From contig JBLDXI010000042.1 in assembly GCA_047495785.1 (NCBI GenBank), positions 1,736,001 to 1,800,000 of the forward strand: a DNA stretch of 64,000 nt, written 5' to 3'. Position 1 is the stretch's first letter, and each line of letters opens with the position of its first letter. Made by a program: the position numbers and the translations under genes. Shown piece after piece: positions 2,980 to 62,956 of the stretch. The stretch comes from Lepidodermella squamata (lineage: Eukaryota; Animalia; Gastrotricha). The notes under the pieces were generated by a model that searched no databases, was not told where the DNA came from, and saw only the letters and a program-made list of their open reading frames with translations.

Positions 2980-2993
2980 TTATTTATTTGATT

Positions 2994-3058
2994 CCATAAA
3001 TAGAAATACGTGACTCCTGAAAAAGGTCATTTTTAATTCGGACGCAACGATCGCGTGC
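2994..3058 (+). promoter_or_regulatory. Conserved upstream block of type A lectin genes: ATAAATAG box, TACGTGA, AATTCGGAC, TCGCGTGC
   Basis: The same motif order is retained upstream of diverged paralogs at ~33517-33594, ~38753-38820 and, on the minus strand, ~20955-21020 and ~60020-60075. Confidence 0.6.
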
Positions 3059-3125
3059 CATTTTAGTTCCGTTCGGATATTTTTTAAAAGCCTTCATTCG
3101 AGTTTTTTTCAACATCATATTAAAC

Positions 3126-11764: not shown

Positions 11765-12562
11765 GGCGCTCAACTTCCAATTAATCGTCGGTTTGCCTCG
11801 CCAGTTGCCTGGTTTAGCGCAGGGAGCGATAAGTACGGGGAGAGTTTTCAAAATTACCAAAGTTTAAGTGATACTTTTTTATTGGGGTCCCGTGCTACGA
11901 TGGGTTACGTTCCGTCCTGGTCAATGATTTGCATATGCACACGTGCTTGTGTGTGCAACAAATGCTGTGCGCGCGTGCAAATCGACACAAAAAAACTAGC
12001 AACAGGAGCTGGGCGCGATCGCTTAGCGCTAAAATTGCAGTACTGTTGATGATCCTTCGCAGTAAAAACTGTCGCGCATATGCAAATCAACGCTATTTCT
12101 TTGCCGCATCTCACTAAAAAAGGTGGTGATTGCTTTTTGATTGAAGATTACGCATTATCGCCGGTTAGTTATTATGCCCGTTTTACTCTCCGGTAGTTTA
12201 CTGCGATGAAGCTAGTTTTTTGGAAGGGCACCCCGGCCCCCTGGGGAAAGCTGGCTGGTAGGTTTTTGGCAGGCCTTTCACAAGGTCTTCAAAAAGCTGC
12301 CAGCTAAGTTTTCCCCAGGGGGCTGAGGGTGCTCTTTTTAAAGCTAGTTTTATCAAAGTGTAATTTTCATTTATCAAAGTCTAGGGTATCATGATTTAGG
12401 CGGTTTTTATACCAAATTATTTATTTGATTCCATAAATAGAAATACGTGACTCCTGAAAAAGGTCATTTTTAATTCGGACGCAACGATCGCGTGCCATTT
12501 TAGTTCCGTTCGGATATTTTTTAAAAGCCTTCATTCGAGTTTTTTTCAACATCATATTAAAC

Positions 12563-33668: not shown

Positions 33669-35248
33669 ATGATGAGGGCCATAGATCTATTCTCATTCAT
33701 TTGCCTATTTGGAGGTGTCTCCTGCCAATGGAAACGCTGTATGTCACTACTAGACAATTCATTCGTGGATTGTGCGACGTCATGTGATTCATTGAAAGAA
33801 TATCAGGTAATTTTGTTATTTCCCGACCTTTTTACCTTTACCTGATCACAAACAAATTTCCATAGTCCGGGTCTATCATTTCCACCTACGATTCGTGTCG
33901 AAATGGAGTGAGTAATCATTAAAATTAAACTTTAATTTAAATTTTAAATTTCATTTTCCTGAACAGAATGGTCGCATGTGTTACAAATTCGCTGCCCTAA
34001 CCCCAAGTTGTCGCCCCGGCATTGTTCCATGCAAAGCTCCTGATGAAATATCGGTACGTTATTTTGTAAATTTATATATACTAAACTATGATTGTTATCT
34101 CGATCAGTTTCAGCCTTTCTACAGCCGATCACTACTTCGCTCGAGTTTGCAATTATGTGAAGCTGATAGAAATAATTTGGCGGTAAGTTTCAATTTTTAA
34201 TGATTCGATCGCTTAAAATTCAAATCTGTATTTTTCAGAATCAAAAATTCAAGCAGTGCTCATTGAATGGCTTGCTGGTCACTTGCGTCCCAATCAACCA
34301 AACGTGCCCTAACAGCACGGTATTTATATTGTTTAAATTACCTGAGAATTAACAGTAATATCCGCGAACTGTTTGAAATCATGGATTCTCGACATTTTGA
34401 ATTGTGGCCTCTTATTTATCAGGCTTTCGCGAATAAAAATATTAATTATTAATCAAACCAAAAAGATATTTTCCTAAATTTCTGGAATTTCTTCGCCCGG
34501 GTTCTAAGTTGAACTTCAGTACAGTGTGACTCGAGCGGAACAAAGCTCTGCGTTGGGAGATCATGTCCTGCGGGGTCTACTCAGGTAGAAACTCGTTTTA
34601 TATTTATGATAGGATTTTGTAAAATAAAACTGTTGTTGTCGTTTCAGGTCAAGCTCTACGCAGATTTGTCATCCTTCCAAACAAATTACGCAACCTGTTT
34701 AGCAGACCTCACACCAGTAAGTTCCGAGCACTTGTAAAATGGTTTCTCAAATTCTCAAAATCCCCATTTTTCTCCATCAGGCCGTCTATTATCGGTGTCT
34801 TGGACCTAACGGCGTTGTAACATGCCGCCCAGCAGATTGCAACGGTGACGAGAAGAAGTACCCATCGAAAAACTTCACCAGCCAATCGGCTTGTCAGAAC
34901 GCTGTAAAAACCGTGCAGTATCACTCTGGCGCCTTGTATCGCTCTGGAGCTGACGCAAATTGCAAGAACCGAGGCGGGTTATTGGCGACTATCAAGACGC
35001 AGGCAGAACTCGACAAAGCTGTGGTTGATAAAGGCGCGGGTAATTTTGCCCACATCGGCCTAACGAATCTGTCGGGCAATTGGACTTGGGATGACGGCAC
35101 GCCGTATGCCAACCTTCCGCCCTGGGATTCTGGCGCTGGCGAACCCAATTACGGCGCAGATGCCTGTGCCATTCTCTACGATGGTGGGGTCATCAAAGAC
35201 GACGGCAGTAACTATCCCGCGATCGGGTTTTTCTGCGAAAGCCGATGA
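33669..35248 (+). CDS. Type A lectin with an internal deletion of exons 6-7 and the start of exon 8 (shortened variant or pseudogene)
   Basis: Exons 1-5 present (to 34319), then an exon 8 remnant that is in frame only from acceptor tacAG|34525; exons 9 (34648-34716) and 10 (34781-35248) intact. Confidence 0.7.
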
Positions 35249-38621: not shown

Positions 38622-38893
38622 GCATACGGGCACGTTACAGACTGGCCCGAGCGCGGAGTGGTAAAGTGCTGTTACCCTCCGCTGTTGAATTTTGCTCGCC
38701 TTTTTTTCGTATTTTTAGCAGTTGTTGTGATGCCATCTGTTTAATCCATTTCTATAAATAGAAAAAATACGTGATTCTTGTAAACAGCTCGCATTGAATT
38801 CGGACGCAGATTTCGTGTGCTCCTATTTTTGTTTCAGTTAGATAGTTCTAAAAGCATTCATTCAACGTTTTTTTAACATCATTTTCAACATAC

Positions 38894-40798
38894 ATGATGA
38901 GGGCTTTAGCTTTATTTTGCTCATTACTTTGTCTATTTGGGGGTGTTTCCTGCCAATGGAAACGCTGTATGTCACTGCTCGACAATTCATTCGTGGATTG
39001 TGCGACGTCTTGTGATTCATTGAAGGAATATCAGGTTAATTTTAAAAATTCTCCGATCTTTTTCAAAATTGGCAACAATCTTTTATTAGTCCGGTTCCAG
39101 CTTTTCCGCCTATGATTTATGTCGAAATGGGGTGAGCGAGCATAAACATTCATTCCAAAGCTGATTTTTTATTCGAGCAGAATGGTCGCATGTGTTACAA
39201 ATACGCAGCTCTGACTCCGAGTTGACGCCCCGGCATAATTCCGTGTAAAGCTCCTGATGAAATATCGGTACGTTATTTTGTAAATTTATATATACTAAAC
39301 TATGATTGTTATCTCGATCAGTTTCAGCCTTTCTACAGCCGATCACTACTTCGCTCGAGTTTGCAGTACTGCGAAATCGATAGGAACAATTTTACGGTAA
39401 GTCGTCACCTTAAAAAATATTTCGTCATAGGCAAGTCTGTTTGTTCATCACAGAATCAACATTTCAAGCAGTGTTCATCGAATAGTTTGTTGGTCACGTG
39501 CGTTCCTATCAACCAAAACTGCCCGATTAGTACGGTTTGTAAATAATTTAGCTATGAATTTTTGAAGTGGACCTTCACCTATGTTCGCCTAAGATTTCAG
39601 CGAATTCTTAGTTGGTAGAAACTGGTCTTAGATCTAGGAGGACAACATTTTAACAATACCATATTTATTCATTCACTCTTCGAAATAGGGACAGCTTGGC
39701 ATTACGTTACTGATATTCTTGTATTTTTCCCAGATTAATGGTAGCCAAATATTCGCAAACCTTGCTGCATGCGTTGATGGGAAAGGTTTGGAGATTTGTT
39801 TCTAAATTGCTTTGGGAATATAGCTATCTTTTATTAGTTCAAGTACCAGACAGTGAGAAGCCACATGTTCGCTGTTTCAGCAACCCTGGACGAATCTTCA
39901 ATGGCTGTCGCCTCAGCTCAGTCGGCTGCTCGGCTAGCAACGAGACCCAAGAAGCAGCCCCGAAGCCGTACATCAACCGAGATAACTGCCTTCGAGGCGT
40001 AAGATAATTGTTCATCTTTCTTCTGATGAGGATTTGTTTTTTCCAGGCTGCTGCACAGTGCGATGTGGGCGGGACAAAGCTTTGTGTTGGTAGAGCCTGC
40101 CCTACTGGTTCGACTCAGGTATGAAAGGTTACTTCTCTTCAAAAATCTTCACCGTTCGACAATAAATCAAGGAAATTTTGTTTGTTGAAATTTGTAATTT
40201 CAGACGAAGCTCTATTCAAATTCGACATCCTTCCAAATGAATTACGAGACTTGTTTGACCGACATTAAGCCGGTAAGTTTTGAACCATTTTTTTTTTAAT
40301 TTCCGTGGCCGTGATATGTTGTTTTTTCCACAGCCAGCCTATTTCCGGTGCCTCGGACCACAGGGCGTTGTTGCATGCCGACAAACAGATTGTAACGCTG
40401 ATGAGAAGAAATACCCATCGACGAGCTACATCAGCGAGACAGCTTGCCTCAACGCAGTCAAAACCGTGACATTTTATGCGCAGTCCAAGTTTCGCATTCA
40501 AACAAGTAATTTTTGCAAGAGCCTCGGTGGGCTATTGGCGACTATCAAGACGCAGGCGGAACTTGACAAAGCTATGGTTGACAAGGGCGCGTTGGCGTTT
40601 GTCCACATTGGCCTGTCGAATCAATCTGGAAATTGGACTTGGGACGATGGCACGCCGTATGCCAACCTCCCGCCTTGGGCTTCTGGCTCGCCTACGTCGA
40701 ACGCAAACTCATGTGCCATGCTTAACGATGGCGGGATCATTAAAGTCGGCTACTTCAACGATGTCGCGCTTGGATTTTTCTGTGAAACCTTCGCTTAG
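38894..40798 (+). pseudogene. Type A lectin, 10 exons, with a single in-frame TGA (39223-39225) at a conserved Cys in exon 3
   Basis: All exons and splice sites are otherwise intact; AGT-TGA-CGC versus AGT-TGC/TGT-CGC in paralogs. Confidence 0.75.
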
Positions 40799-42829
40799 CC
40801 GTGCTAAAACTATTGAATTTGACTGGATTTTGATATTACCTACTAATCATGAGACATTGGGATATTGATATCGGCATGCATATGTTCATGTCCCTAATAT
40901 AGAAAATGCTAATTTTAAGTCGTAGATGATGGATTTGTGAGCGACAAATAAAAAGTTGATTATTAATTATTTTAATTCTCGGGTTTATTTCCGCACATTT
41001 TGTGAGTAATCGAAAATTCCTAAAATACCTATACCAATAAAACATCTTATTGGAATTAAAATAATTAATTAATTAATCAATATTTTATTTGATTAATCCG
41101 AATAATTTCTTCAAAATGCCTCTCGCCTTGCTTATGACGCTTCCAATTATATATTTCAATGATGATGCTTTCAGCCGCAAGAGAAATCGACTAATGATTA
41201 TCACTAGGAAAAAAGTAAAGCTAATTAGCTATTTCTATTTAGCCAAAGCTAGCTAAAAAACCTAGGCTATGCCTCAGCTTTTTATCAGCTAAAAAGCTAT
41301 AGCTAAATAGCTATCGATAGACTGCGACTGGAAGCATGCGGCGTAATAAAGTTACACAACAATGGCTGTGACCCTTTCTGATTACCACTCGAAGCTGCAT
41401 TCGAATCGTTTTTCATCCATATACACACAGAAGCAAAAAATATTTATTTTAACAACTTAGTTCTTAAATGCTACGACTCCAGCAGTGGCAGCAGTTTTCA
41501 ATTGAATAATTTCAAATGGAGTTGGCTCCAGGTAAGAATTGCCATCGACTCACCAGGTAATTACTTTTATCAATGGCCTTTTTTAACTAAATTTTCTCAT
41601 AAATTCGGGAAAAAATCAGAATAATTTCCTCCAGCTAGCACGAGCTTCATGATCTTGCCCTAACTAACGCAGCGCGAAAAATAACAATTTAATTAATGGA
41701 CTAACCGGAGGAGGCTTGTGTTGGTTAGAGGCTTCATTATTCAATACGTATTTCATTAATTCATTTGAGGATTCACTAATTTTTTTCAATAATATTCAAT
41801 TGAAATTTCATTATTTTTGTCAGAATTGCAGGTCATGGATTTAGCGATAAACACTTCTGAAAATGCATTGTAGCTGAAATTTACAGGTAAGAAGCTATTT
41901 TGAATTTAATCGATTAGCTTCCTTTCACGCAATTTTTTTATTTTTTTCAGGAGAATTCTGGTTACCTCAGTTGATGATCATCGGTTGAAGACCATCGGTG
42001 TGCAATCCGTCATTGCTGGGTAAGAGGTAAGGATACTGTATTTTTTTGCTAAAATAAATTTTCAATCTCGAAATTTTTAAAAATTCATACAATTAATTTT
42101 CAGTGATTCGTTCATTTTTCCTGTTTTCGGACGTCAACCCCGAGCTATTAGCGTCTGGGCAACTATTGGAAATAATAGTAGTCACTCCTTTATTTTCTTG
42201 AAAATCAGATATTTTTTCATGCTGAAAATGCTTTACTGAACTTGATTGAATTGAATTGAATTTATTTGAAATTTTTGAAATTTTCAGGCAGGCTAAGCAT
42301 GAATTTCACTTCGTCTTATACCTAGAGAATGTTGCGCTTAATTCATTGGTGAATTTTCTAGAATTATTGTGGCCAATCTTGACCTGCAAGAAATGTCCAT
42401 AAAGCGATTTCAGGCTACTAGAAAATTCAAAAATTTGGTTCCGCTAACAGCAAATTTGGTTCCGCTGACAGGAGGACCCAAGAATAAAGTAATGTGAAAC
42501 AATTTATAAAATATACAAATTTCTCAAAATTAAACCTGAAACTTGACTTTTTTGAAAATTTGAAATTTTTGAAAAAATTTGAAAAATTCTAGTGTTAAAA
42601 AAATTACCGAAAGTTACTGAAATAACAAAATGCGATGTAATAAAATTGTTGGCACTTGGTTAAGCAAGTATCAAGTGTAATTTCAAGTGTCAAAATAAAA
42701 ATTTTAAAATTTCAAAATTAAATCAGAAAATTGAAAAAATTGTAATCCAATTCTTTTAGCGATTAACTCCTAAATATCTGAAAATCAATTTTAAATTTTT
42801 CGGAAAATTTTTCATGAAATTTAAGGGTT

Positions 42830-43218
42830 CTATGACTAAAGAGCACGCGATCTAAGAGCAACGATTAAAGAGCAATGCATTAAGAGCAACCGATAAGAGA
42901 GCAACTGATTGAAGAGCAATTGGTCATAAGAGCAATTATTAATGAGGAATAAGTGGCACGCGACTTGATTTTTTTTGCTTTTCCTAATCAAGTGAATCTC
43001 GACCGATTAAGATGCCTGAATTGCTGTTTAATCGGCTCCCGTATTCACTTGATCGCCTACAGAAAAAAATGAAGTCGCGTGCCACTTTTTTGCCCTGATT
43101 TATCATTAATAATTGCTCTTATGACCAATTGCTCTTCAATCGGTTAATCTCTTATCGGTTGCTCTTATTGCATTGCTCTTTAATCGTTGCTCTTAGATCG
43201 CGTGCTCTTTATTCATAG
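42830..43218. mobile_element. Palindromic MITE nested in the CACTA element
   Basis: ~110-bp inverted arms of AAGAGCAA repeats; flanking direct repeat TAAGGGT. Confidence 0.7.
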
Positions 43219-43795
43219 TAAGGGTAAAAACGTGTAACTGTCAACCTGACCACCAGAAAAAAAATTCGCGATTTAGATAGAAATTTATATATTTCCAGAA
43301 AGCCCTGGACATGAGCTTTCAGAAAATATATATGACTATAGTCAGTTTTGTCAGTTAACATGATTTTTACCTTGTCAAAAATGGTACACATTTGACATTG
43401 ACGAAATGCCAAAAGATGGCATTTTTCCCAACAACATTTTGACGACAGTTGAAAGTGCCTATGTAATATTAATATGTTTAAATGTTGATGACCATGTAAG
43501 CTTCAATTTGAGACATTGCTCGATGCCGTAGTCAAAATATTTTTTGACCAGGTGATGTTACATTTTTTGACACTGTCGCGTCGTTCCGTCCATCAATTAT
43601 TGTTTCTAATTAGATTTCAACTAAGCGGTGCACTTTTAAAGGCCTCGGGGATGGGTAAAGCTGCGTCTATATTTGTTGGCAACATTTTGGCCTAAAAATT
43701 TTCCGGTCAGATGCTATAGATGTTGCGCAATCACATGGACGGAACGACACGTGACGGAACGACGGACGGAACGACAAAAAAATAACTTTTCAACG

Positions 43796-44102
43796 CTGAG
43801 GAATTTCAAAAAATAAATTAGATATTCTGATTCAGCATGAAGAGTTAGAGATGGATACTAATTTGCGCGCGATTATCTTCCAAAATGGGGAAGAAATAAG
43901 GCGGGATAGTGGAACAGCGCGTGCATGTGCGTGTGAGTGCGCGCGCGCACATGAACTTCGCGCTCAACACGGGTGAGAGCCGTATGCGCAGATAATGCCC
44001 AAATCACGCGCAAATCACTCACTAATCATGCGCAAATTTGCACACCGCCCTAACTTTTCACGCTTATTCAGAATATCTAATTTATTTTTTGAAATTCCTC
44101 AG
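43796..44102. repeat. Inverted-repeat element nested in the CACTA element
   Basis: CTGAGGAATTTCAAAAAATAAATTAGATATTCTGA and its reverse complement; flanked by GACGGAACGAC repeats. Confidence 0.6.
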
Positions 44103-45050
44103 GGTTGCTGAGATAATCAGAGCGTTGTTCCGTCCTGTCGTTCCGTCCTGATGACCCTACATTGAAATGTGATGCGGCGTAACCATACGATAAGCTATCA
44201 TGTCTTACCGAATGCATTACCAATTTAAGAAGGGTGTCATAACTCGTTCTCTTTATTCTTCAGATTGCACGCGACCTTCAAGTTCGAGAGGACATTCTAC
44301 GCTGAAAGCATGGCTGTTCTCCTCAACGCCAGCATCGACTGGCTCACCGAGCCGAAGTTCGCCCTAAATTGTTCAATTCGGGAAATATCTAGCAGCGAAA
44401 TGGAACTTTTTTAAATAAATATTGCAATTACTACTTCATATTCGAACAAAATCGGTCTCATTCGAGGTCAAGTATTCTCATACTGTGAATTATCTTTCGA
44501 AAAATTCGAAGACATTTTTCGCCGTGATGAAATGTGCTGGCAAATATTTTGTTATTTGTGATTCAGTCTCGACTGTTCTCGTTTTTTACCTGTTGAATAC
44601 TTTTATAAAAATTGTTCTGAAATAAAAATGACAAAGACGCTGAAATTTCATGTTTTATGAATTGAAATTGAATAAGAATATGGGGGAAAGGGGTAGGGGG
44701 CTGGGTGCGATTCTAGCTAATAAACCATGAGCTTATTAGCTTTCAGGCCAAAAAGGGACATCGCGCAATGTGCAACAGCTGTGATAAACAAGAATTCCAC
44801 GCCGACCCACCACTCGCTCGGAGCCTAGCTATTTAGCCATTCATGGGTTATTAGCTTCCCTGAATTTAGCTGAAATAGCTAATTAGGGGGACATAGGAGG
44901 GGTTATTAGCACTCTTGGTCCTTGGGTTTATTAGCTAGCTAATAAACTATACTTTTTTCCTAGTGTATCTGATCCCCTGCATTTTACCTTCAAGTCAAAT
45001 GTGTCAAATAGGTACATATAGGTGTTGCTAGGTTTTTTGTCCGAATGTTC

Positions 45051-45406
45051 TCAAGCTTTATACTCCTTGCATTTGTTGTTGCAATCGTCGAGTTTTGTGA
45101 AAGCGAACGGCTTCACAGCATCGACCAAGCAGGAATCCTCCAGCTCGACACGTATGCATTTGTTGATATTATCGTCGAAAACATAGGCCCATTTAGCTAC
45201 GGGTTCGCAGCCGTCGTACTGGTCGCGGCGGAAGAACTCACGGTAAGCACATCGATCATGCTTCTGCCTGCCACCTGTGCGACCTAGCAAGAGAATAATT
45301 GAAGAAAAGCCTCTATTTGAATGATGCCGAGACGCGACTTACAGGCTACAGACGCAGCAACAAGCAAGCACAGAGCAAAAAGTAGGCAAAATAGTTTTCG
45401 AAACAT
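45051..45406 (-). CDS. Small secreted divergent Kunitz/BPTI-like protein, 2 exons, ~98 aa
   Basis: Exons 45406-45343 (signal MFRKLFCLLFALCLLVAASVA) and 45283-45051; six-Cys spacing with YVFD...C and F....C...C. Confidence 0.75.
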
Positions 45407-46011
45407 GTTCAGTGATTATAGCCGAATAAGCTCAAAACCAGTGCAGAGCGTAATGAGCTCGGTTCAATTGTTTTTTTTCACCGATTTAACGTGAGCTACG
45501 GTAACTCGTTTGAATATTAATTTGTTTTTGCAGCAGCATGAGCATCAGATCTCATTACGTTTCTCCAGCTCTGATGAACTCAATGCTTACAATTGGCACA
45601 GGATTAGGGGGAGGCATTGAATAGGAATTATCAGCATGTATAAAATGAGGTTATTGCAGTGGGCTCAAATATCCACCGACCAGCTTCGAAACAACCCATT
45701 GGCAGTGTAACCAGCCAGTGTACCCAGATTGAGCCTTACATGGTCTAAAACGCATCTAATTGCAAGAAAAAGAACTAGAAAAATACTTTAACCCGCAGCA
45801 AATTCATACTCTTTTCCGCAGCAAATTTCTTTATTTTCTTTCCAGCATCTCCAATTTTTCTCCAAATCTTGGGATTCTCACTTATTCTGATAGAGGAGGA
45901 TTAGGGCTGTCGAAAAAGCCCTAACTCATTAATAAAAGATTGACTAATTTGGGGATATGATGGGGATATGAAGTCCGAAGTCATCATACTTTTGTCTCAC
46001 AAATCACACTA

Positions 46012-47111
46012 CAGTGCTCCCTCGATATAAGCAAGGGGGCGGGATCCACGCGATTGCTCTTATCGAGGGTTGCTCTTATAGAGGGCTGTTAAAGAGCTAG
46101 CGATGAATCATAAGTGCGTCGCCAGGTTTTTTTCTCAGTTGCTAGGGCGACGTTGATTTTACTGGTTAGCCATATCCAAGATAATCTGGTGTTCATGTAA
46201 TGATTTTCGATGTGGTAGATAGTATTTGATATGCAAAGTATGATCCAATTTGATATGATTAATTGATCCACATTTGGAAATTGGAAGGTTAGCAAAGCTT
46301 GAAAGCCTTCATTAGAATTAAATGTAGCAATTCCATTTGGTTCGAATACAAACCATGGATACACTAGCGGATAAGCGAACAATGTTAGGTAAAATTCGGC
46401 TAGGAGCCTGTGATGCCTAAAACCTATCCAAGGTTGAAACGCATCTTTTCTCATAAATCCGTGACAAAAACTGAAGGACTCGGGGCGAACCTTGCTTGGA
46501 AATCTTATTGGAAGTTTGCTTGAATCTTGAGTCGAAGCTGCATCCTAACTTTATTTTTTCAGAATTCTATTGAATTAAAACAGATTCACGGCAATTCCTC
46601 GTGATGTGCTTTGATAGAATACAACATGCTTGAATGCCACCTTTATCTGTTCTCAACACTTCGGTCAAACAGTAGATAATCTGCGGTTTGCTTTTTATCG
46701 CTTTTTAAATCATTTTTTCTGACCCGTAACGTAATCACTATCATTCTTTAAAAAATCTCATCAATGGCTAGTAGTAGTGTTTGTGAATGAAGAAATACGA
46801 GAGAGCAAACGCGCGCGCACGATCTCAAAATTGAAGCCAGTGCTGAGATAAAAAACATCGATCTGTAAAGATGGAGATCAAGAGATCACGAGGCGCCGCC
46901 GTCCAACTGAAAAATCGAAAACGCCAGGAGCAGTGTTACAATTCTGTTGCTAACGTAAACAAATTCTTCATGTAAATTAAAAATTATCATGTAAACAATT
47001 TTAATTTGTCGAAAAATAATTTTTTAACAAATAAAATCAACGGGATCCAAAAAAAGTTGCTAGTAGCGAGGGATTGCTCTTATCGGGGTTGCTTATATCG
47101 AGGGAGCACTG
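46012..47111. mobile_element. Non-autonomous Tc1/mariner-superfamily (pogo/Tigger-like) element, 1100 bp
   Basis: Perfect 23-bp TIR CAGTGCTCCCTCGATATAAGCAA with TA TSD; no intact transposase. Confidence 0.85.
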
Positions 47112-47720
47112 TATTGGTGAAACTTGAAAAGGGTTCGTTTGGCAACATTAGTGCCAATCGATAGCCCTCGAACCCCGCTATCAACTGGCGTCGTGATTAG
47201 CTTCTTATCAAACGTAACCTGGCGTCCATGATTGAACAAATGGAAATTTGCTGCGGAAAAGAGTGTAAATTTGCTGCGGCCAAAAGTACCGTCCAAGAAC
47301 TAAAATGATATAATTTTCTGCAAATTCCGTTAATTGCAAGGTTCATGAAATGGGAAGGCCACGCCAATAACCCCAAGATATTGCAATTCATTCAATTCAT
47401 TTTCCATAAAAACATATCATAATGAAAATCCTGAATAGCGGAGCTACTCTCATAATTGGATTATTAATGCGCAACTTTTGGGTATGACGCTTTTAGCAGC
47501 TATCAGCCCACTCAAAAACCTAGCCACACAGCTATCTTAGTCTATCATGCGGTAAGATGACGGACTTAGAGGGTTATATATTATTTATCGTCAAGGTGAG
47601 TAGGTGTCGCATGCGCATGGCCTAGGGAGGTAGTGGGCGGACGTAGGCGTGCTAGAATCACCTTTTTCGTTCAAGCAGGCCAGGCAGAGTCTTACCTACG
47701 TTTTTAATCTCTTCGATAAC

Positions 47721-50700
47721 ATGAATTAAATTCTTGCAGCCTCTTACCTTCTAATCTTTGCAAGATCCACTTGTTCGCAGGCAACAATTTGCTCTGGCGC
47801 AACTTACCAGCCGCAGTATTCGCTTGTAGACTTCTCGAACTTCAAGTGGGGAGGCCAGCGTAACTATATTCTCAAAACTATATCCTTGAGCAATTCGGAC
47901 AGTGGGACAGCGGCCGCTCCTAATCTATCAGTAAGTTGTTTGCTACTACAGCGCGTTACAGTAGTTGCCCAGTAGTTGAACACTCCCATGGTGAATGGTT
48001 CGATGGTATTTTACCCGGTTAGACCAAATTGTCTTGGACTTTGAAATCCCATTTACAAGTGACATACTTACTCGATTACTATTATTGTTACTTATTCAAT
48101 TTTTATAAAAATTTTCTGGCCATGAGATGGTACTTCGTCTCTCATTTTAGGGTTTCAGAACCCTTTTCCGTGTATTTTCTCATGGGGTAACGCTGTACCT
48201 CTTTGTGAGCTTTGGCTAATTTAAATCAACGCTCTTATTTTTTAAAATTGCAATCGAAAATTGTTTGTATCATTCACCAATGTAATTTTCAACAGCCGTT
48301 CACTCTCGACGACTTTTATGCTGAAATAACCATTTCGATGGCAACATATACCACCGAGAGTCCTCATCCCGGGTTCAGCGTGCTATTCAACAGTGAGACA
48401 TTTGGCAGTTATGATGGAAGTCTGGACATGGGTATGGCTTTCTTTCCTACCTTTATTTTACGCCTCATGTTCCACGTATGGCCCCAGGGTTGCGCTTAAC
48501 AATATCCCCGTCGACTGGCTCTGTTATTGGAGGCTGGTTTCCTTTGCCCGACGCCAAAAAATGGTTGGACATGGGCAAGAGCCAATCATGCGCTTCGTAC
48601 GCCATGTGCTGGACTGGCTCGCAAACGCTGATGATGACATACCTGAGCGGGAAAAAAGTCACGTGGAAGTTACGAATGAGCCGGAACAGCGTGTCACTTT
48701 CCGCTTGCGTTTTCAACACTAGTGACTGTTTGAAAACCCTGGAGAATGCTGCGCTGCCAGCTTCCTTACAGACTACGTTTGGCGATTTGGATACCTATTT
48801 TTCGATGATGGCTGCAACCGATAAGGCAGTCGAAGTTTACTCGATTACTGTCTGGGACTGCGCAACAGGATCAACCACAACAGTGACACCCACGGTTAGT
48901 AGAAATGTTCATTAAACCCTTCCGTGAATGAATAATCGCAATTGTTTGATTAAAGTGCGCCTTAAAAATCGAACTTTTGCATAAATTATTGATCCCCTAC
49001 GCAATGAGTGCGGATGTTATTTTCTTATGCGCTGTCGGTATTTTCGAGGTTAATCCGAGGTGATTAACTTTGCAAAATATTAGAAAAGTTCGGTGAAATC
49101 AAGTTAGTATCTCAATATCAACTTGAGTTTCGATCCTAATTAGAAGTCCTGTCTTTTAAGGAGGAAGGGAGCATCCTAGATTTTAGAAATGTTTAGAATT
49201 CGACATTCCGAAAAAATTTTCTAATCCCTGATTAAAGACTAATCCAAGAATACAAGAATCGGGCAGACTGTCATAACAGCAAATACCAAAAACAGCAAAC
49301 GCGACAAAACAGAAAATTGTTCAACTTGCGAAATAACAGCAGAAAGTCGATGCATAGTAAGTTGTTGCTGTTTCGTCGCGAATAAAAAAAATCTGTTATG
49401 TCGTAATTGCTGTTCTGCGGAGTTGCTGTTTTGCCGCTGTACCAAGAATCGTCCTTCAAATAACTTCGAAAATATAACAGAAAATTCGCCCAACTCCACT
49501 ACTAGCCAGACATTTTTCTATTACTGGTAAAGGTCCAACCCCAAAGTCTGATGTGCTCGAAAGGAGTATTCCAGCCGCAACTCTCGATGCAAAGCTTGAT
49601 CGACCTCGTTACAAACTGGACGTACAACGTTGACCTAAAAAAATCCTACCAATACCAGGCTATGAGTTTGTCAACCGAGGATGATTCACGTGCAGCTATG
49701 TTTGCGAAAGCGGTCAGTATAGATCAGCCAAAGTATTTGAGGAATTAAAGAAACTTTTGTAATTCGCAGAAGTTCAATCTAACAGATTACTACGTGGAGG
49801 CAGTATTAGTCAGTCGTCTGGATTCTGCAGCCCTATTTGCCATCTCTCAAACCTGGAATTCCACTGATACTAAAGTCACCGGTAAGCTAAATTTCCGCGA
49901 ATTAGATGGAATGACACTGCGTTTTCCATTATTAGGACTTGGCATTTATCTCCCAAATGTGGATAGGGATTCTACTAAGGATCGTGATGTTCCTTTGGGT
50001 CGATATTTGACTGCAAATTTCTTGAATAAAGACGCCGACCAGTCGAAGATAAGGAATTGCAGTGGCGCAAATGCGTGCTATATGCCAAATCAGCATTTCA
50101 TCACATCGTACATGCAAACGGGATCTGTTTGGCAGCTCAGAGTGAAAGGCAACGATTTTTCTTTAAATGTGTGTCGTGCCGGTTTGAAATACTGCGCACG
50201 CGTGTTCAATGCAACTATCGACCATGGCATGGATTTCTCACGCATGAACCTATCTCTGGGAATCATTGCAGCTGATGCCCATTCTAGCGTCGGTGTGTTT
50301 TCTATCAGCGTTTGGGACTGTTCGCAAACTGCTAGTGGAACGGCCGCAACTTCGAAACCTGAACTACCAGTTTGCTCGAACGCAGTTTTGCAGCCGCAAT
50401 TTTCGATGGCTAATATAAGTCTATTCAAAGCGAACTGGGGATACGCTCAATCGGAATGGCGACCCAGTGAGATGTTATATTTTCCAGGTTATTTGAAGCT
50501 CAGCGAAGTTGACTCAGTGTCATCGTGGCTGATTTCGCAGAAAGTGAGAAATTTTTTCGAAAAATGTTACAAAAAATAAATTAATTTTTTGAACATCAAA
50601 GGCATTTAAACTCGACGATTTCACCGCTGAGATAACAATGTTTTTGGGACCATATGAAGCTAATCAGTCAGGGTTTGGAATTTTCCTGACCAACCAGTAC

Positions 50701-53490
50701 TCTAACAGTCGACAAATGCAATATGCAATTAGCGGCAGCGAAAATATCGGTGAGATTCTCTGCTTTGCTTTTTGCCTCGATATATTATTGACGCGTTTCA
50801 GGACTAGCCCTGCTCATATCACCTGTGAAGCGAAGCGTCTTCGGCGGTTTGATTGGTCCAGATCCCGATGAAACGAAATGGGGCAGCCGGAATAACGGCG
50901 GACCTTGTGGATCGTTTGAGTGGTGCTGGAAAGATCCGTCGAACCTAATGGACCTTTACCTCAACGGCCGTATGGTAACGTGGAAGCTGCGGGTCACTAC
51001 AACGAGTATATCGCTTGACTTTTGCTTGGTTGATACCAGCGATTGCATAAGAACACTCGATAAGGTCGCGCTTTCTACTTCGTACCAATCGATGTTTGGC
51101 GGCATGAATTCGTATCTGATGATATCAGCCACGACTAACCAGGAGATCAATTTGAATGCAGTCAATGTATGGAACTGCGCCGATGCGAACTACGCTCCAG
51201 CGGCATCGGCAAGTTACTTAATTGTTGATCTTATCGATAACTTATAAGGTACCCAAGTTTTTACTACAATTGTGCAATAGGGAAATAGCTCTATGAATTT
51301 TTAATTATTTAATTATTTATTTTTGTACTAATTTGTAATATTTAATTTTTAATTAATTTTAATACTTTGAGGTGGATTTTTTACAATTTATTTTTGAAAA
51401 TCTCACAGGGCTATTTTGTTATTGTTTGAAATTTCAAGATTAGCTTGCCGTAGAGAAATCATAATGGCTAGCTATAGAATATTCTCTTATTTTTTGAATA
51501 ATTCGCTGCCCTTCATATAAATGTGCAGTGAGATAATATGTATCCAATTAACTATTTTATCAGCAGCTGCAAGCTCACAATCTGATGTGTCCCAAAGGCA
51601 TCCAGCAACAAAGATTTTCATATGAAAACAACGAAAATCCATCAAATGCTTGGGATATCTACACCAATCCAATTCAATTGCCATTCGACTACTTGTCTTT
51701 TGGTACTCTCAGGCTGTCAATGCTCAAAAATGTATCCATGTGGAGCAAAGCTGTAAGTAGATTTTATGCTCTGCGTATTGGTTTTTTTCCAACTGATCGA
51801 ACTTTCAGAGCTTCAACTTGACCGACTTCTACGTTGAAGCATTGCTGACGCCAATATCTGGCGGCATCGTTTTGATGATTGCCAACAGTTCAGTGATTAT
51901 CAGGCCAGATTCTAGCGGGAACTTAAATCAATCCTTTGATATCAACGACATGATTGTCAATAAAAATTCGTTCTCAGGTTTGAACTTTTTCAATTGAAAA
52001 TATTAACCTAGTGTTGTCTGTACACAGGCCTTGCAATCTACGCTTTGGCCACCCAAGGTGTACCTCAAGAATATTCGACGCTCAACTTGAAGAGCCAAGC
52101 CAATACTCCATGCTATCAATTGGACGGCACTCAGTCGCACTGCTTTCTCAATTGCACCACATCCGATGCGTGCTATAAACACTCACGTTTGTTCCTTGAA
52201 ACCTATTCCGGTTACCAATCAATTTTGCAAATTCGAATGCGGAACAAGGAAGTTACTGTCGACGTTTGCCGCGTTAATTCAATTTTTTGCTCACGAATTT
52301 TCGCCACGACATTGAACAATAACTTGAATTTTGCCAGCATGAATAATTCATTTGGCATAAGCGCTACTGGCATCCTTGATTTATCTTCGGTCAAAGTCTG
52401 GGATTGCGCAATACCTTTCACTGGAACGGGATCGGTTGAAGCATTGGCAACCATGACAGCCGATAAGTTACCAGAGAGCGACAAAGGCTTGGTGAACTTC
52501 CTGCCTCCATCCTCGGGACTTTCAACTTCCGATTGGTCGTCGTGCTCCACAACTTGCGGGATTGGCTTGAAATGGCGACTAACGGCGAATGGAACGAAAG
52601 AGAGCCAACAGTGCTCGAATTCCGGCCGATGCCCGGCGACTACAGAGGAACAATCGCGCGGTGTCGATTTGATCTTCTCGCCTGTTCCAACTCTGGACGG
52701 CTATTTCAAGGCGAGAAAGGCGATCAAACTCACCCTGGCGAGGAAGATTAGTGATACTTGCGCGAAAAACTACTCGAAATGCTGCCCAGCTTACACTGCA
52801 TGGACAACAAGCCCTACTTTCAGCTACGTCGAAGCTGATGATCTGATCGATTCGAACTACGCCAATACTTCATTGAAGGCGAATGGCTGCTGCTTCAGGG
52901 TTACGATTCTGATCAGCAAAACTACACCGGGCAAATTTTGCGAGGCTGGTGGGAAGCTGAAATCAGCCAGTAGTAGGAAGAAACGTGCGGCAGCCGATTC
53001 AACTATATTGAGCCAGGCAGATCTCAGCGCGGTGATTGCAGACCCTGATTTCAAGAAAGCGCTATCGACAGAGCTTGGCTATTCAGTCGAAACGAATGCC
53101 TGTCTACCAACTGAGAGTCGGTGCTCCGGGGAAGACGCTCTACCATCGCAGCAATCCTCTCAGTCAAGTGGCGATTCTGGATCAAGTGGACTGAGCCAAA
53201 CTACGATAATTATCATTGGGTCGGTTGTTGGGGGAGTTGTAGTCCTTGGAATCGCGATCGGCTTAATCGCTTACTTTTGCTGCGTTAAGAAGAACGCGGC
53301 GAATAAGATATCACCGCCCTATCACCCAACCGATCGTAGAATGTCGACTGGAGTTGGAGCGAATGATTGGTACACAGATCCGAAGGCAGGGGTTTATGCT
53401 CCTCAGCGGGCTTCTTCGAACGGAATGCCGGTTCAGTTCTCCGGCAAATATCCGATTCATTCGCAGAAGCCATACGGCAACAATTTTTGA
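47721..53490 (+). CDS. Type I membrane receptor-like protein, 11 exons, ~1342 codons: 4 tandem L-type-lectin/ConA-like domains, TSP1 repeat, Cys-rich juxtamembrane domain with RKKR, TM, Tyr-containing tail; TAA at codon 3
   Basis: Exons 47721-47930, 48296-48431, 48488-48894, 49533-49712, 49770-49881, 49936-50543, 50602-50749, 50802-51208 (GC donor), 51564-51752, 51809-51977, 52028-53490 total 4029 nt in one frame; WSSCSTTCGIG..R; TM IIIIGSVVGGVVVLGIAIGLIAYFCC. Start is uncertain. Confidence 0.8.
49262..49443. mobile_element. Intronic copy of the short dispersed repeat at 37586-37924, in opposite orientation
   Basis: GGCAGACTGTCATAACAGCAAAT...GCTGTTTTGCCGCTGTACC. Confidence 0.6.
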
Positions 53491-53758
53491 CTGCTGATAA
53501 CTGATTTTCAAAGATGCACGGCTTATACATCAAAACAAATAAGTACTCTTTGAATTGATTGATTGGTGATTGGTGACATGTGCTCTGTAAAGAATCCATG
53601 GTTCATGGTTCAATTAATTATCACATTTGACGATGATCCTGTGTTGTGTTTTATCAAAAAAAATGGGTTGAAACGACAGCGGTGAATGAGCGCAAATCAA
53701 GTAAGCAGTCTACGAATCGGTCCGGAAATTATTGTGAGTTCACCTAAAGAGCGCCTTA

Positions 53759-56082: not shown

Positions 56083-56952
56083 ATGATATTGCTCATTTCA
56101 ATAAGCATCATCGTCTTTGTGGGTTTGTGTTTTATCTAACATTATCTATCTAAAAATAACAGCTGCTTTTTCGATTAGGCATTGCCTTTTCTGAAGCAGG
56201 GATTGCTACTGCCAGGCGGCAGTCCAAGCACAGATCATGGCGGCGTATCGCCCTCGGCGACAATGCTAACACCAACTCGAATGTGAATCGAATCGAGAGT
56301 TCGCCGTATTTCTACTATGCGATCGATGATGGCGGCGACGAGGTGGCTCCGCCGCTGCTGCCCTGGTGGATCTACTACCACCCGAAACCAACGACACCGT
56401 CTACAACTAGGCCAACTGAAGCTCCGGTAAGAATTTCTACGGAGTAAATGAAGAGAAAATTTAAAAAAAATTTCATTGGTTTTTCAGGCTGTATTTTCTC
56501 GCTGCCTCGGGCCTGATGGTGTGGTAACATGCCGATCGACCGCTTGCGACAGTAATGAGAAGAAATACCCGTCGACAACCTATGCCAGCAAGTCCGCATG
56601 CCAGAACGCCGTTAAAACATTGACATTTTACCCTAATGGCGGGCAAGTGTCTCAAGCTGTCACGTACTGTACCAATCTTGGCGGACTGTTGGCGACCATC
56701 AAGACGCAAGCGGAACTTGATGTTGCTATGGCACTTAAAGGATCAACTTCGTTTGCTCACATTGGCCTGTCGAATGAGTCTGGGCAGTGGACATGGGCCG
56801 ATGGCACGCTGTATGCCAACATGCCGCCTTGGGGCGCTGGCCAACCAGGCAACCTGGCAAATGCTTGTGCCACTCTGTGGGATGGCGCGCTGGTCTACGC
56901 AAATCGCTGCTTCGATGGCGCACCGGGATTCTTCTGCGAAACCTATGCTTGA
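56083..56952 (+). CDS. Type B secreted C-type lectin, 3 exons, QPG-type CTLD
   Basis: Exons 56083-56122, 56179-56426, 56488-56952. Confidence 0.87.
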
Positions 56953-57655: not shown

Positions 57656-59935
57656 TTAAGCATATGTTTCACAAAAAAATGCATAGAAATCATTGCTGCA
57701 CGAAAAGTCGAAAATAACAGGGCTACCGCTGAAATAGTCCATAACAGCACAAGCATTTGGACCAGCATTTGGTCGACCGGAGAGCCAAGACGGGATGTTG
57801 GCATAGGGCGCACCATCGACCCACGTCCATTGCCCAGAGTCATTCGACAGGCCAATGTAGCCGTCAGAGTTTGAAGAGGCCGCCAGAGCATCCATAGCTT
57901 CCGCCTGTGTCTTGATTGTCGCCAACAGCCCGCCAATGCCCGCGCAAGTTGCGATTGCCTGGTCGCGAGTCTTTTTGGTTGAGTAGAATTTGAATGTTTT
58001 TACGGCGTTCTGGCAGGCTGACATGCTGGCGAAGGGCGTCGATGGGTATGGCTTCTCAGTGTCCTGGCAAGCTGTCTCTCGGCAAGTAACTGCGCCATTT
58101 GTTGCAAGGCAACGGAAAACCGCCTAATAATAACACCGAATAAATTTCGTGCAAAATTTGAATAATGTCAAATTTCTCAAACTTGGTAGAATGGATAAAT
58201 AATGAGAAAAAATGCAATAAACAATAAATTAACTTCGGGAAAATCGAGAAATTGGAAATTTGTGGTTTTTGTAAAATTTTACATTAAATTCGTGAGATCA
58301 GAGAAATGATTTCCGTCACTATCTATCCGAACAAACATAAAATAAAGAAGTAGTAGTGGTCATTTCAGCAGAAGTGACCGAAAATTGTCGAAATTTGATT
58401 TTATTTCTTGTATGTTTCTCTACATATTGGGTATCGATAACTTACAAGCTATTTCATCAATCACAGCTCACAGCATCCCAATTTAGAAAACTCACCGATC
58501 ACCGAGTTATGAGGAGATCAAAAAAATTGGAGGCATTGCAAAGCTCAAACCTCAAAACGCACCTTCGTGATATCTGACAAACAGGCCTGATAGTTAGCTT
58601 CAAATGAAGTCGAATTCGAGTAGCGCATGATCTTTTAAAAAACAAGAATATCGCTACATGTTGAGAAGTGAATCATTTCAAAAGCGTTTAAACTAGAACT
58701 ATAGAAATATGTGTTATCTACCTGAGTCGAACCAGCAGGACATTCTCTTACGACGCAAAGCTTTGTTCCACCTAAATCACACTGAGCAGCAGCCTGAAAT
58801 ACAAACCCTTATTGGATCCGATTTAAAGATTTTATTACAAAATTTAACTCACGCCTCGAAGGCAGTTATCCCGGTTGATGTACGGCTTTGGAGCTGTTTC
58901 TTGGGTTTCGTTGCTAGGCGAGCAGCCGATTGAGCTGAGACGACAGCCAGTGAAGATTCGCCCAGGGTTGCTGAAACAGCGAACATGTGGCTTCTCACTG
59001 TCTGGCACTTGAACTGAAAAGGGATTCCAACATTGTTGGAACATGTCAAGAGCAGAACTTCCTCACTTTTCCCGTCGACGCATGTAGCAAGGTTGACAAA
59101 TGTTCGACCACCGGCAGCCTGAAAAATGAAGGATCACCATCAACCGACTCTAATAGTGTGCTTTGACAGAATTTAGTAATAAATAAAACTGAAAGCGATA
59201 GAAATTGGAATTTATACAATAGGAAAATTTGACAATTTAATTTCGACAATTCAGATATTTTGAGATTCACATACCGTATTATTCGGACAGGCTTGGCTAA
59301 TTGGGACGCACGTGACTAGCGTACCATTCGACGAGCATTGCTTGAATTTTTGATTCTGAAACGAATCGAAAATCATACTTTCAAAGATGAAATCATGAGC
59401 TATTACTGCAAAATTCATCCGATCGACTTCGCAGTATTCCAAACTTGCGCGAAGTATTGACCGGCTGTAGAATGGCTGAAACTGGTCGCATGAAAATTAA
59501 AAGAAAAAGATGACTGGAATGACGCGATAATGTTATGGTTTAGTTGAATGACGCACCGATATTTCATCAGGAGCTTTGCAAGGAACATTGCCGGGCCGAC
59601 AACTTGGCGTTAAAGCTGCAAATTTGTAACACATGCGGCCATTCTGTTCCGAAAATTAACAAAAGTCGTTTATGAGAAAGCTTTTTATAGAACTACTCAC
59701 CCCACTTCGACATACATCGGACGTAGCAAAACTGGGGCCAGACTATGGGATTTTTACATGGTAGATCGGCTGAATGGTGGAATATTTGAATGAAAACCTG
59801 GTATTGCTTCAATAGGTCACAAGCCACCGAGCAGTCCACGAATGAGTTGTCGAGTAGTGACATACAGCGTTTCCATTGGCACGAAACTCCTCCAAATAGG
59901 CAAAATAATGACAAGTAAGCAACGACCTTCATCAT
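57656..59935 (-). CDS. Type A secreted C-type lectin, 10 exons, RPN-type CTLD
   Basis: MMKVVAYLSLFCLFGGVSCQWKRC start; homologous exons with GT-AG sites; terminal exon 58123-57656. Confidence 0.85.
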
Positions 59936-61949: not shown

Positions 61950-62956
61950 TTAAGCATAAGTTTCACAAAAAAATGCATAGAAATCATTGCTGCACGAAAA
62001 GTCGTAAATAATAGGGCTGCCGCTGAAATAGCCCATAAGAGCACAAGCATTTGGACCAGCATTTGGTCGACCGGAGAGCCAAGGCGGGTAGTTGGCATAC
62101 GGCGCACCATCGGACCACACCCATTGCCCAGAGTCATTCGACAAGCCAATGTAGCCGTCCGTGTTTGAAGAGGCCGCCAGAGCATCCATAGCTTCCGCCT
62201 GTGTCTTGATTGTCGCCAACAGCCCGCCAATGCCCGCGCAAGTTGCGATTGCCTGGTCGCGAGTCATTTTGGTTGAGTAGAATTTGAATGTTTTTACGGC
62301 GTTCTGGCAAGCCGACATGCTGGTGAAGGACGTCGATGGGTATGGCTTCTCAGTGGCCTGGCAAGCTGTCTCTCGGCATATCACCGCGCCATTTGGTGCA
62401 AGGCACCGAAAGACCACCTAATAATAAAATAAATAAATTTCACGTAAAATTTGAAAAATAAAATTTGTACACATTCGAAAAAATCAAAAGAAAAGCTGAT
62501 CATTTTATTATGCTCCTTAATGATCCGAATTTTTGTTTAATTTTCAATTTAATATTTATGGCAAATCTTTTTTTGAATTCGTGAAATTAGGGTTCAAACC
62601 GCTTGTTATTACCTGAGTCTTCGTAGTCGTTGCCGGCGTTGTAGTCGTTGGATTCGGCGGCTGATAGTAGATCCACCAGGGTAGCGGAGGAGGAGCAACC
62701 ACGTCGCTGCCGTCATCAATTGCATAGTAGAAATAAGGCGAACCCTCGAGTCGATTCACATTCGAGTTGGTGTTAGCATCGTCGCCGAGGGCGATACGCC
62801 GCCATGCTCTGTGCTTGGGCTGCCGCCTGGCAGTAGCAAGTTCCGCTTCAGAAAAAGCGATGCCTAAGCCAGAAGAAAATAATTACTTTTTGACGAAACA
62901 TTAATGAAGAAAGAACAACCTATGAAGGCGAGGCTTATGGAAATTATCAACTGCAT
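61950..62956 (-). CDS. Type B secreted C-type lectin, 3 exons, RPN-type CTLD
   Basis: Exons 62956-62920 (MQLIISISLAFIG), 62863-62613, 62417-61950. Confidence 0.87.

Follow-up and report, generated by a model that had tools for sequence, protein, structure and literature searches.

A probable membrane glycoprotein gene with four tandem, divergent L-type-lectin-like domains in the gastrotrich Lepidodermella squamata

Introduction

The known ERGIC-53/VIP36-type lectins contain one lectin domain, sort cargo between the ER and the Golgi, and carry C-terminal sorting motifs. The plant LecRK proteins likewise have a single legume-type lectin domain, borne by a single-pass membrane receptor with an intracellular kinase, and they form large families. 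The L-type-lectin-like C-terminal domain of thrombospondin and many LamG and pentraxin domains have protein-binding, adhesion, or structural roles. To our knowledge, the L-type lectins so far studied in animals are few, and they are single-domain receptors for sorting in the early secretory pathway.

Here we describe a locus in a 64,000-nucleotide stretch of the genome of Lepidodermella squamata (assembly GCA_047495785.1, contig JBLDXI010000042.1, positions 1,736,001 to 1,800,000), referred to below as the window. On balance, we favor reading the locus as a real multi-exon gene whose product is a type I membrane glycoprotein some 1,340 residues long, in which four divergent L-type-lectin-like heads stand on a base made of a TSP1 repeat, an RKKR module, and a transmembrane helix.

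Results

The gene lies on the forward strand at 47721–53490 of the window, with 11 exons and approximately 1,340 codons, and encodes four repeats of about 250 residues in A-B-A-B order; a TSP1-type repeat comes next, then a Cys-rich module that includes RKKR, and finally a membrane helix with a 67-residue tail. All features below are on this strand. The start codon and the stretch coding for the signal peptide occupy 47721–47777 and are broken in this copy by a TAA, to which we return below. Repeat 1 (type A, 47778–48894), delimited by HMM envelopes and splice candidates, consists of piece a1 to 47930, b1 at 48296–48431, and c1 at 48488–48894, the last being the 407-nt exon 3. Repeat 2 (type B, 49533–50357) consists of a2 at 49533–49712, for which 49506 is a possible alternative acceptor, b2 at 49770–49881, and c2 from 49936 to about 50357; b2 and c2 are separated by an in-frame intron of 54 nt (49882–49935) that measures 55 nt in a syntenic copy of the gene on contig C85 and so must be spliced out there. 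Repeat 3 (type A, 50367–51212) and repeat 4 (type B, 51574–52443) were placed by HMM envelopes, splice candidates, and the tree. In repeat 3, a3 runs to 50543 and is continuous with c2 of repeat 2 with no intron between them, b3 lies at 50602–50749, and c3 at 50802–51212, with a length in this sequence-based model of 411 nt, or 422 nt with the alternative donor 51223, its 3′ end being uncertain. Repeat 4 comprises a4 at 51574–51752 (alternative acceptor 51564), b4 at 51809–51977, and c4 from 52028 to about 52443. Exons on both sides of the gene encode C-type lectin domains (Pfam Lectin_C), and an Rfam search of the entire window returned no family at threshold.

The alternating order of the four tandem repeats, proposed in a sequence-only reading that preceded this work, was recovered both by pairwise comparison and by phylogeny. 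In blastp comparisons of exon translations, repeats 1 and 3 were 41% identical over 130 residues (E 3e-35) and repeats 2 and 4 were 27.5% identical over 138 residues (E 2e-17), with about 28% identity (E 1e-10) between type A and type B; no further copy was found within the window besides these four. A maximum-likelihood tree built from 60 repeat cores placed repeats 1 and 3 together in one starred clade (98/97) and repeats 2 and 4 in another (98/94); each window repeat groups there with the repeat of the same number in a paralogue from contig C19. Intron positions are common to all four repeats, with a phase 0 intron between pieces a and b and a phase 1 intron between b and c, the latter falling in every case inside the codon of an invariant Gly, and none of the paralogous loci examined carries a whole repeat in a single exon. 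The sequence-only reading was right about the matching introns and the 407-nt length of exon 3; it gave that same length to the counterpart of this exon in repeat 3, which our model puts at 411 or 422 nt.

For the fold of the repeat we relied on an AlphaFold model with pTM 0.71 and core pLDDT of 84–91, computed on a stretch that is not a clean domain: b2 and c2 are followed in it by a3, and the unspliced in-frame intron adds 18 residues. With this partial-domain model, Foldseek returned 26 matches at E ≤ 1e-3 (3e-5 to 1e-3), all of them to ERGIC-53/LMAN1, VIP36, Emp46p, or Emp47p. VIA-align gave ERGIC-53 a Z of 11.4 (154 residues aligned, rmsd 3.5) and VIP36 a Z of 11.0, and the modelled b and c part aligned to ERGIC-53 residues 104–277. 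The expectation of a ConA-like beta-sandwich with L-type lectins as best structural matches was therefore borne out by both programs; of the families named beforehand as possible other identities, MAM was rejected because it was absent from the structural matches, and LamG because it ranked lower in them (LamG and pentraxin-type chains, Z 8.7–9.1). Profile comparison pointed the same way, if weakly. The Pfam L-type lectin profile PF03388 matched six of 52 N-terminal pieces at E ≤ 10, at profile positions 8–82, and no second family recurred; these matches, to N-terminal pieces of six paralogous repeats, are collinear with the fold match, and the best of them reached 19.7 bits (E 5.7e-4), short of the curated cut-off of 24 bits. 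Three sub-threshold PF03388 matches in the genome adjoin loci of the family, and two canonical L-type lectin genes are present elsewhere in the same genome. Pfam searches of every exon translation gave no match on the window's own repeats, and no family recurred in a search with the full set of 60 sequences in the repeat alignment. Taken together, the model and the collinear profile matches support the view that the repeats would be related to the L-type lectin domain of ERGIC-53 and VIP36, from which they have diverged very far, and that they are arranged as an A-B pair in duplicate.

An alternative explanation could be that the repeat belongs to some other ConA-like family, for example the galectins, and that the match to ERGIC-53 reflects only the common jelly-roll. 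Galectins scored Z 10–10.6, within one unit of ERGIC-53, but their alignments span 122–130 residues as opposed to 154–159 for ERGIC-53 and VIP36, and at about 250 residues the repeat has the length of an L-type domain rather than that of a galectin (135 residues). This alternative would also not account for a Foldseek list made up, at E ≤ 1e-3, of L-type lectins only, or for PF03388 as the sole recurrent Pfam match and at a collinear N-terminal position. The Pfam galectin profile had no match to the repeats, and we regard this explanation as improbable.

A more serious alternative is that the repeats have the lectin fold without lectin function, binding proteins or serving as adhesion or structural modules. 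Conservation across about 60 copies falls mainly on hydrophobic residues and on Cys, Gly, Trp, and Arg. Piece b also has conserved Asp, Glu, and Asn, and piece c conserved Asn and Asp; these polar positions could be matched to no binding site, and no conserved acidic or amide residue could be placed on a metal or sugar site. It is in keeping with this alternative that the threshold of the L-type lectin profile was missed and that thrombospondin C-terminal domains were among the structural matches (Z 8.8–9.2). Against it, the best structural matches of the repeat are true sugar-binding domains, and an extracellular, multivalent, heavily glycosylated setting beside C-type lectin genes would, circumstantially, suit glycan recognition. 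We think this alternative rather unlikely, and continue to favor lectin-like heads that recognize ligands.

The base of the protein was found much as the sequence-only reading had described it, by direct reading of motifs and by hydropathy. The TSP1-type repeat (52471–52653) has the core motif W-S-x-C-S-x-x-C-G-x-G-x-x-x-R from 52534, preceded by a short helix-like stretch, and the motif is kept in the tails of paralogues. Pfam scores for TSP1 families were below their cut-offs (TSP1_CCN 24.4 bits as against 27, TSP1_ADAMTS 19.9 as against 23.8, and TSP_1 16.8 as against 21.6); these families matched seven to eight of the nine rows of the tail alignment, and a profile search of the PDB found the alpha-TSR of circumsporozoite protein at E 1e-3. 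The Cys-rich juxtamembrane module (52654–53127) includes RKKR at 52975–52986, a predicted furin-type site that fits the R-x-K/R-R pattern and is conserved as RKKR or RRKR in the window copy and in six of the seven other copies with aligned tails. It is followed by a linker rich in Ser, Gln, and Gly (53128–53199) and by a single transmembrane helix with a Cys-Cys and Lys-Lys stop-transfer stretch after it (53200–53286), with a best 19-residue hydropathy window of 2.67 at 53206–53262. The cytoplasmic tail with its stop codon occupies 53287–53490 and, at 67 residues, is close to the approximately 70 first estimated; it holds several Tyr and Pro, has motifs common to the window gene and its four closest paralogues, and is devoid of a C-terminal di-lysine or di-aromatic ending. 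AlphaFold modelled the tail module at a mean pLDDT of 43, too poor for a fold search, and the Pfam SEA profile did not match it at E ≤ 1.

The window copy opens ATG AAT TAA, with the ATG at 47721 and a stop at 47727–47729, codon 3, that had been overlooked in the sequence-only reading. At this position the C85 copy reads TAC, and its signal peptide is intact, the leader consisting of Met and a hydrophobic stretch that ends before Q-A-T-I-C. The two copies are 95.65% identical in exons, with no frameshift, and 89.4% identical in introns, which hold all of the frame-breaking indels; mismatches are distributed over the three codon positions as 34:27:108, with 91 synonymous and 60 non-synonymous codons. 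A non-coding artefact was rejected on the grounds of this codon-position bias and the confinement of indels to introns. The gene is real and under coding constraint. Stopped at codon 3, the window allele is probably null and may yield no protein, while the C85 copy is intact.

Whether the locus is better described as harboring a dead gene, the window copy being a pseudogene of very recent origin or a null allele and only the C85 copy working, is to us an evenly balanced question. Four paralogues start with Met and a hydrophobic signal peptide in the same exon in which the window copy has TAA for TAC, and exon 1 has no later in-frame Met from which translation could begin. On the other side, the rest of the frame stays open for about 4 kb and differences from the C85 copy fall mostly on third positions, so that any loss of the gene must be very recent. 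It is possible that the stop is a single-base assembly or amplification error, the published assembly of the species having been made from amplified DNA (PMC11660948), or that splicing from an exon further upstream to the AG at 47738–47739 bypasses it.

The gene is one of many. At least 121 domain pieces of the repeat type were found in the genome, and the Cys-rich tail module occurs at about 29 places. The tandem layout and the membrane anchor of the proposed surface receptor are upheld, and the gene is not unique. Paralogues on contigs C19, C18, and C85 share both the lectin-like repeat and the base of TSP1, Cys-rich RKKR module, and membrane helix, and the number of heads varies among sister genes. 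In some genes of this genome this head sits on a Cys-loop channel subunit, and others have the base with other heads, with no repeat matches near C19:2.84–2.88 Mb or C13:2.96 Mb. Outside this genome, a HMMER search with the largest exon against 1.84 billion representative proteins gave no match at E ≤ 1e-3, and there was no match in a word-index search with the last exon or in a profile search with repeat alignment A1, none that was usable in the ESM Atlas, and only chance-level matches in PDB sequence searches with repeat profiles and one paralogue piece. Literature searches for tandem L-type lectin domains in animals found no relevant description. By sequence, then, the repeat is an orphan, and its family has been seen so far only in this genome.

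Discussion

The patterns above are consistent with a receptor whose outer part would consist of four beta-sandwich domains in a row, each about 250 residues long with six cysteines as staples; the TSP1-type repeat, the Cys-rich RKKR module, and a Ser-rich linker would connect them to the membrane helix and short tail. The four heads may bind extracellular ligands multivalently, most likely glycans, and a furin-type protease may cut the stalk during export, yielding a two-chain or sheddable receptor. A large and diversified family of this kind could serve as a repertoire for surface recognition or adhesion. That the protein cooperates with the products of the neighboring C-type lectin genes is pure conjecture. 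It is also conceivable, and to us a tentative idea held with less confidence than doubt, that gastrotrichs have turned the L-type lectin fold, normally single-copy and intracellular, into an independent, large system of surface recognition or sensing not seen in other animals, for immunity, food detection, or adhesion, with heads placed in tandem on a cleavable base or, in other genes, on Cys-loop ion channels.

Tandem L-type-lectin-like heads at the cell surface, in more than 100 diverged copies, would be a new example of a recognition repertoire built from an unexpected scaffold, and the family opens a way to test ideas on the cell biology of gastrotrichs, which is almost unknown. The syntenic pair, in which one copy stops almost at once, amounts to a small natural experiment in how alleles decay when an animal is largely clonal.

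Each of the known systems resembles the window protein in part. Among solved sequences the Plasmodium circumsporozoite alpha-TSR best matches the TSP1-type unit (E 1e-3, single-domain entries), and the match takes in the residues ahead of W-S-x-C-S, but it is short and weak and the remainder of both proteins is unrelated. Thrombospondins combine TSP1 repeats with an L-type-lectin-like beta-sandwich, as does the window protein, but they are secreted, lack a membrane anchor, and have a single C-terminal lectin-like domain after EGF and calcium-binding repeats, so that both the order and the number of domains differ. Plant LecRK proteins share with it a legume-type lectin domain at the cell surface, a single-pass receptor layout, and family expansion, the L-type LecRK of tomato also being a large family (PMC11600720); unlike them, the window protein would have four such domains and, in its 67-residue tail, nothing catalytic. 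The closest likeness is to ERGIC-53/LMAN1, VIP36/LMAN2, and yeast Emp46p/Emp47p (PF03388), which provide the best fold match and have a domain of about 230–250 residues; they too are type I membrane proteins whose domain faces the lumen or the outside, and the N-terminal third shows weak, collinear similarity at the profile level. From these cargo receptors the window protein is set apart by its four domains with six cysteines each, its TSP1 repeat and predicted furin-type site, a different tail, and a sequence similarity that stays below the profile cut-off.

Gene model and repeat organization

The window DNA is eukaryotic with short introns, and 47721-53490 on the forward strand comprises ten open stretches coding for related pieces. 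Blastp between exon translations bore out both the four tandem repeats and the A-B-A-B alternation proposed in the sequence-only reading: repeat 1 matched repeat 3 with 41% identity over 130 residues (E 3e-35) and repeat 2 matched repeat 4 with 27.5% over 138 residues (E 2e-17), with about 28% (E 1e-10) between A-type and B-type repeats. No further repeat copies were found by tblastn elsewhere in the 64-kb window. Each repeat is made up of three pieces: a (about 60 residues) contains one Cys and a Q-P-Q motif, b (about 55 residues) contains the motif F-x-L-x-D-F-Y-x-E, and c (about 140 residues) contains five Cys and has V-W-D-C at its end.

The gene model was built from splice candidates preserving the frame together with family envelopes, and has its exons, all on the forward strand, at 47721-47930 (a1), 48296-48431 (b1), 48488-48894 (c1), 49533-49712 (a2), 49770-49881 (b2), 49936-50543 (c2 and a3), 50602-50749 (b3), 50802-51212 (c3), 51574-51752 (a4), 51809-51977 (b4) and 52028-53490 (c4 and the remainder of the protein). 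Together the exons amount to about 1,340 codons; the protein would have 19 N-x-S/T sites, and each repeat six Cys. Intron positions match as had been claimed, the a|b intron being in phase 0 and the b|c intron in phase 1, within the codon of a single invariant Gly, in all four repeats. The equal length of 407 nt given for exons 3 and 8 holds for exon 3 (c1), but the counterpart in repeat 3 is 411 nt in the model, or 422 nt with the alternative donor at 51223. The b2|c2 intron (49882-49935) has 54 nt and is in frame without stops, and so would be missing from any list of open frames; the corresponding stretch has 55 nt in the copy of the gene on contig C85 of the same genome, which proves that it is an intron.

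Coding status and the early stop

That C85 copy lies in a 10-kb stretch (G000:C85:249001-259000) collinear over at least 15 kb with window 38831-53727 at 89–93% identity, the window carrying two insertions, 41203-44996 and 45781-47294, relative to it. The arrangement suggests either an alternative haplotype that has been retained or a segmental duplication of recent origin. Exons of the two copies share 95.65% identity with a single 3-nt gap, whereas introns share 89.4% and contain every other indel; exon mismatches fall on codon positions 1:2:3 as 34:27:108, and 91 differing codons are synonymous versus 60 non-synonymous. Identity, indel placement, codon-position bias and synonymous excess all indicate purifying selection on the predicted frame, which on this comparison of sequences is a real coding gene.

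The sequence-only reading began the gene at the ATG at 47721 and overlooked a stop at the third codon (TAA, 47727-47729): window 47721-47729 is ATG AAT TAA, whereas the C85 copy has ATG AAT TAC at the same place, followed by a normal hydrophobic signal peptide. Four paralogues likewise have Met and signal peptide in the same exon. Most simply, then, the window copy is a very recent null allele; a base error behind the TAA, or a bypass of the stop through an unseen 5′ exon, is less likely.

Fold of the repeat

Searches and fold prediction used single open stretches with exons unjoined. The repeat is an orphan by sequence, with no match for the window repeats in Pfam, for the repeat queries in the ESM Atlas or among PDB sequences, or for a 60-row repeat profile in the protein library, and a search of 1.84 billion representative proteins gave 0 matches at E <= 1e-3. 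Among 52 N-terminal pieces (a or a+b), the only Pfam family matched by more than one was PF03388, the L-type lectins, matched by six (best E 5.7e-4, profile positions 8-82). A six-frame genome search with PF03388 returned two canonical L-type lectin genes above the cut-off (G000:C21:1846645-1847439 and C55:1187226-1187774), indicating that ordinary ERGIC-53/VIP36-type genes are retained alongside an expanded divergent family, and three sub-threshold matches, of which two adjoin matches to the repeat family and one is about 5 kb from its C21 cluster.

No paralogue with a whole repeat inside one exon was found among the loci fetched, and therefore window 49764-50546 was folded instead, with 60 aligned exon pieces from paralogues as input. 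It codes in turn for b2, for 18 residues of the in-frame intron, left unspliced, for c2, and for a3, which belongs to the following repeat. The model had a pTM of 0.71 and a core pLDDT of 84–91, with the intron-coded loop and a3 poorly predicted. All 26 Foldseek matches in the PDB at E <= 1e-3 were ERGIC-53/LMAN1, VIP36, Emp46p or Emp47p, with legume lectins and GH16 glucanases in the next ranks. VIA-align against 48,161 representative chains also agreed with the earlier guess of an L-type lectin fold, placing ERGIC-53 first (Z 11.4, 154 residues, rmsd 3.5) and VIP36 second (Z 11.0); galectins reached Z 10–10.6 over only 122–130 residues. An alternative explanation could be a MAM or LamG fold, but MAM was absent among the matches to these chains, and LamG-type chains scored lower, with thrombospondin C-terminal and pentraxin-like chains, at Z 8.7–9.2. 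In the alignment to ERGIC-53, the modelled pieces b and c cover residues 104-277, corresponding to the C-terminal two thirds of that protein's lectin domain. Since this fold evidence is collinear with the sequence evidence from piece a and both point to one family, we conclude from model and profile together that the repeat is probably a very divergent L-type-lectin-like domain; its matches remain below the PF03388 threshold and thus fall short of formal family membership. We regard the gene architecture and fold as described as highly probable.

The family in the genome

The window gene is one early-stop member of a large lineage-specific family. In the 121.2 Mb searched (151 contigs), a profile from the alignment of 60 pieces found at least 121 pieces at E <= 1e-5, with clusters on C3, C7, C19, C21, C24, C55 and other contigs, and a more distant repeat-core subfamily (E 1e-13 to 1e-6) lying mostly in one region of about 400 kb (C7:4175339-4549729) with further scattered loci on C32, C34, C43, C24 and C2. 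The four-repeat layout recurs in a paralogue on C19 (3.531-3.537 Mb), and in the tree each window repeat clusters with the repeat of the same number in that paralogue, so the A-B-A-B design is older than the gene duplication.

The module that follows the repeats (TSP1, Cys-rich, RKKR and membrane part) occurs at about 29 places, including long open frames at C19:2841922-2880547, C13:2960765-2974333 and C48:1084039-1084971. The repeat profile had no match near these modules at C19:2.84-2.88 Mb, C13:2.96-2.97 Mb and on C48, and so this base seems, from its genomic distribution, to be combined with other heads as well. The head, in turn, appears to be mounted also on ion-channel subunits, since at G000:C19:2192013-2195351 a Cys-loop channel ligand-binding exon (positions 2474-3337 of that stretch, forward strand; Pfam Neur_chan_LBD, E 2.3e-10) comes after the same lectin-like repeats and a stalk rich in Ser and Thr.

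Neighboring genes

The gene does lie inside a lectin cluster, as had been noted, its flanking open exons matching Pfam Lectin_C at 34721-35245, 40277-40795 and 56452-56949 on the forward strand and at 57659-58123 and 61953-62417 on the reverse; these C-type lectin exons are tied to it by proximity alone. Open frames with identical listed ends recur at 2-472, 4733-5266 and 14170-14703, at 1782-2141, 6576-6935 and 16013-16372, and on the reverse strand at 4142-4486 and 13579-13923, at intervals of about 4.8 and 9.4 kb. They indicate that a C-type lectin gene unit was duplicated in tandem very recently. Between two copies of this unit, inside the C-type lectin array, a GC-rich stretch (GC 0.54) houses a retroelement of LINE type, with reverse-strand frames at 7503-10295 and 10274-11863, including a 931-codon frame with endonuclease and reverse-transcriptase domains (Pfam Exo_endo_phos_2 and RVT_1). 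A 159-codon open frame also occurs three times with identical listed ends (26270-26746 and 27603-28079, forward; 30380-30856, reverse); the copy at 26270-26746 had no Pfam match, and the triplicate is probably a repeated element. Rfam over the whole window gave no family at threshold, and no ribozyme was seen behind the receptor gene.

Putative binding function and the C-terminal base

Across the family, the positions that are strongly conserved hold mostly Cys, Gly, Trp, Arg or hydrophobic residues; piece b has a few conserved polar ones as well (Asp, Glu, Asn), as does piece c (Asn, Asp), none of which was located at a metal or sugar site. The pattern is compatible with a structural core whose binding loops vary, and also with the fold being used for something other than a lectin. 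Glycan binding by the heads is accordingly put forward here only tentatively, as a putative function.

Behind repeat 4, the TSP1 core, RKKR and single membrane helix proposed earlier were read directly, all on the forward strand: the W-S-x-C-S-x-x-C-G-x-G core of a TSP1-type unit runs from 52534, RKKR sits at 52975-52986 within a Cys-rich module, and a linker rich in Ser leads to a hydrophobic helix (53200-53286), with Cys-Cys-Val-Lys-Lys behind it and then a C-terminal tail of 67 residues, close to the 70 or so given earlier. A basic RKKR-type site is present in the window copy and in six of seven other aligned copies. A SEA-like fold of this base was not confirmed, the AlphaFold model of the tail having a mean pLDDT of 43 and Pfam giving no SEA match at E <= 1. 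Most likely, the protein would enter the secretory pathway, become heavily N-glycosylated and be cut by a furin-type convertase at the predicted RKKR site, displaying four lectin-like heads on a stalk of TSP1 and Ser-rich sequence. The heads would then bind extracellular ligands multivalently, glycans being the most likely ligands, while sorting or signalling would fall to the tail, which is short and rich in Tyr and Pro, and to the Cys pair next to the membrane.

Assignment of the TSP1-type unit is based on the motif, on Pfam TSP1 families that matched seven to eight of nine rows of the tail alignment, all under cut-offs, and on the PDB. There the best profile match for 52471-52600 (among single-domain entries) was the alpha-TSR of the Plasmodium circumsporozoite protein (E 1e-3), and the alignment takes in the stretch before W-S-x-C-S, which in the alpha-TSR is a helix.
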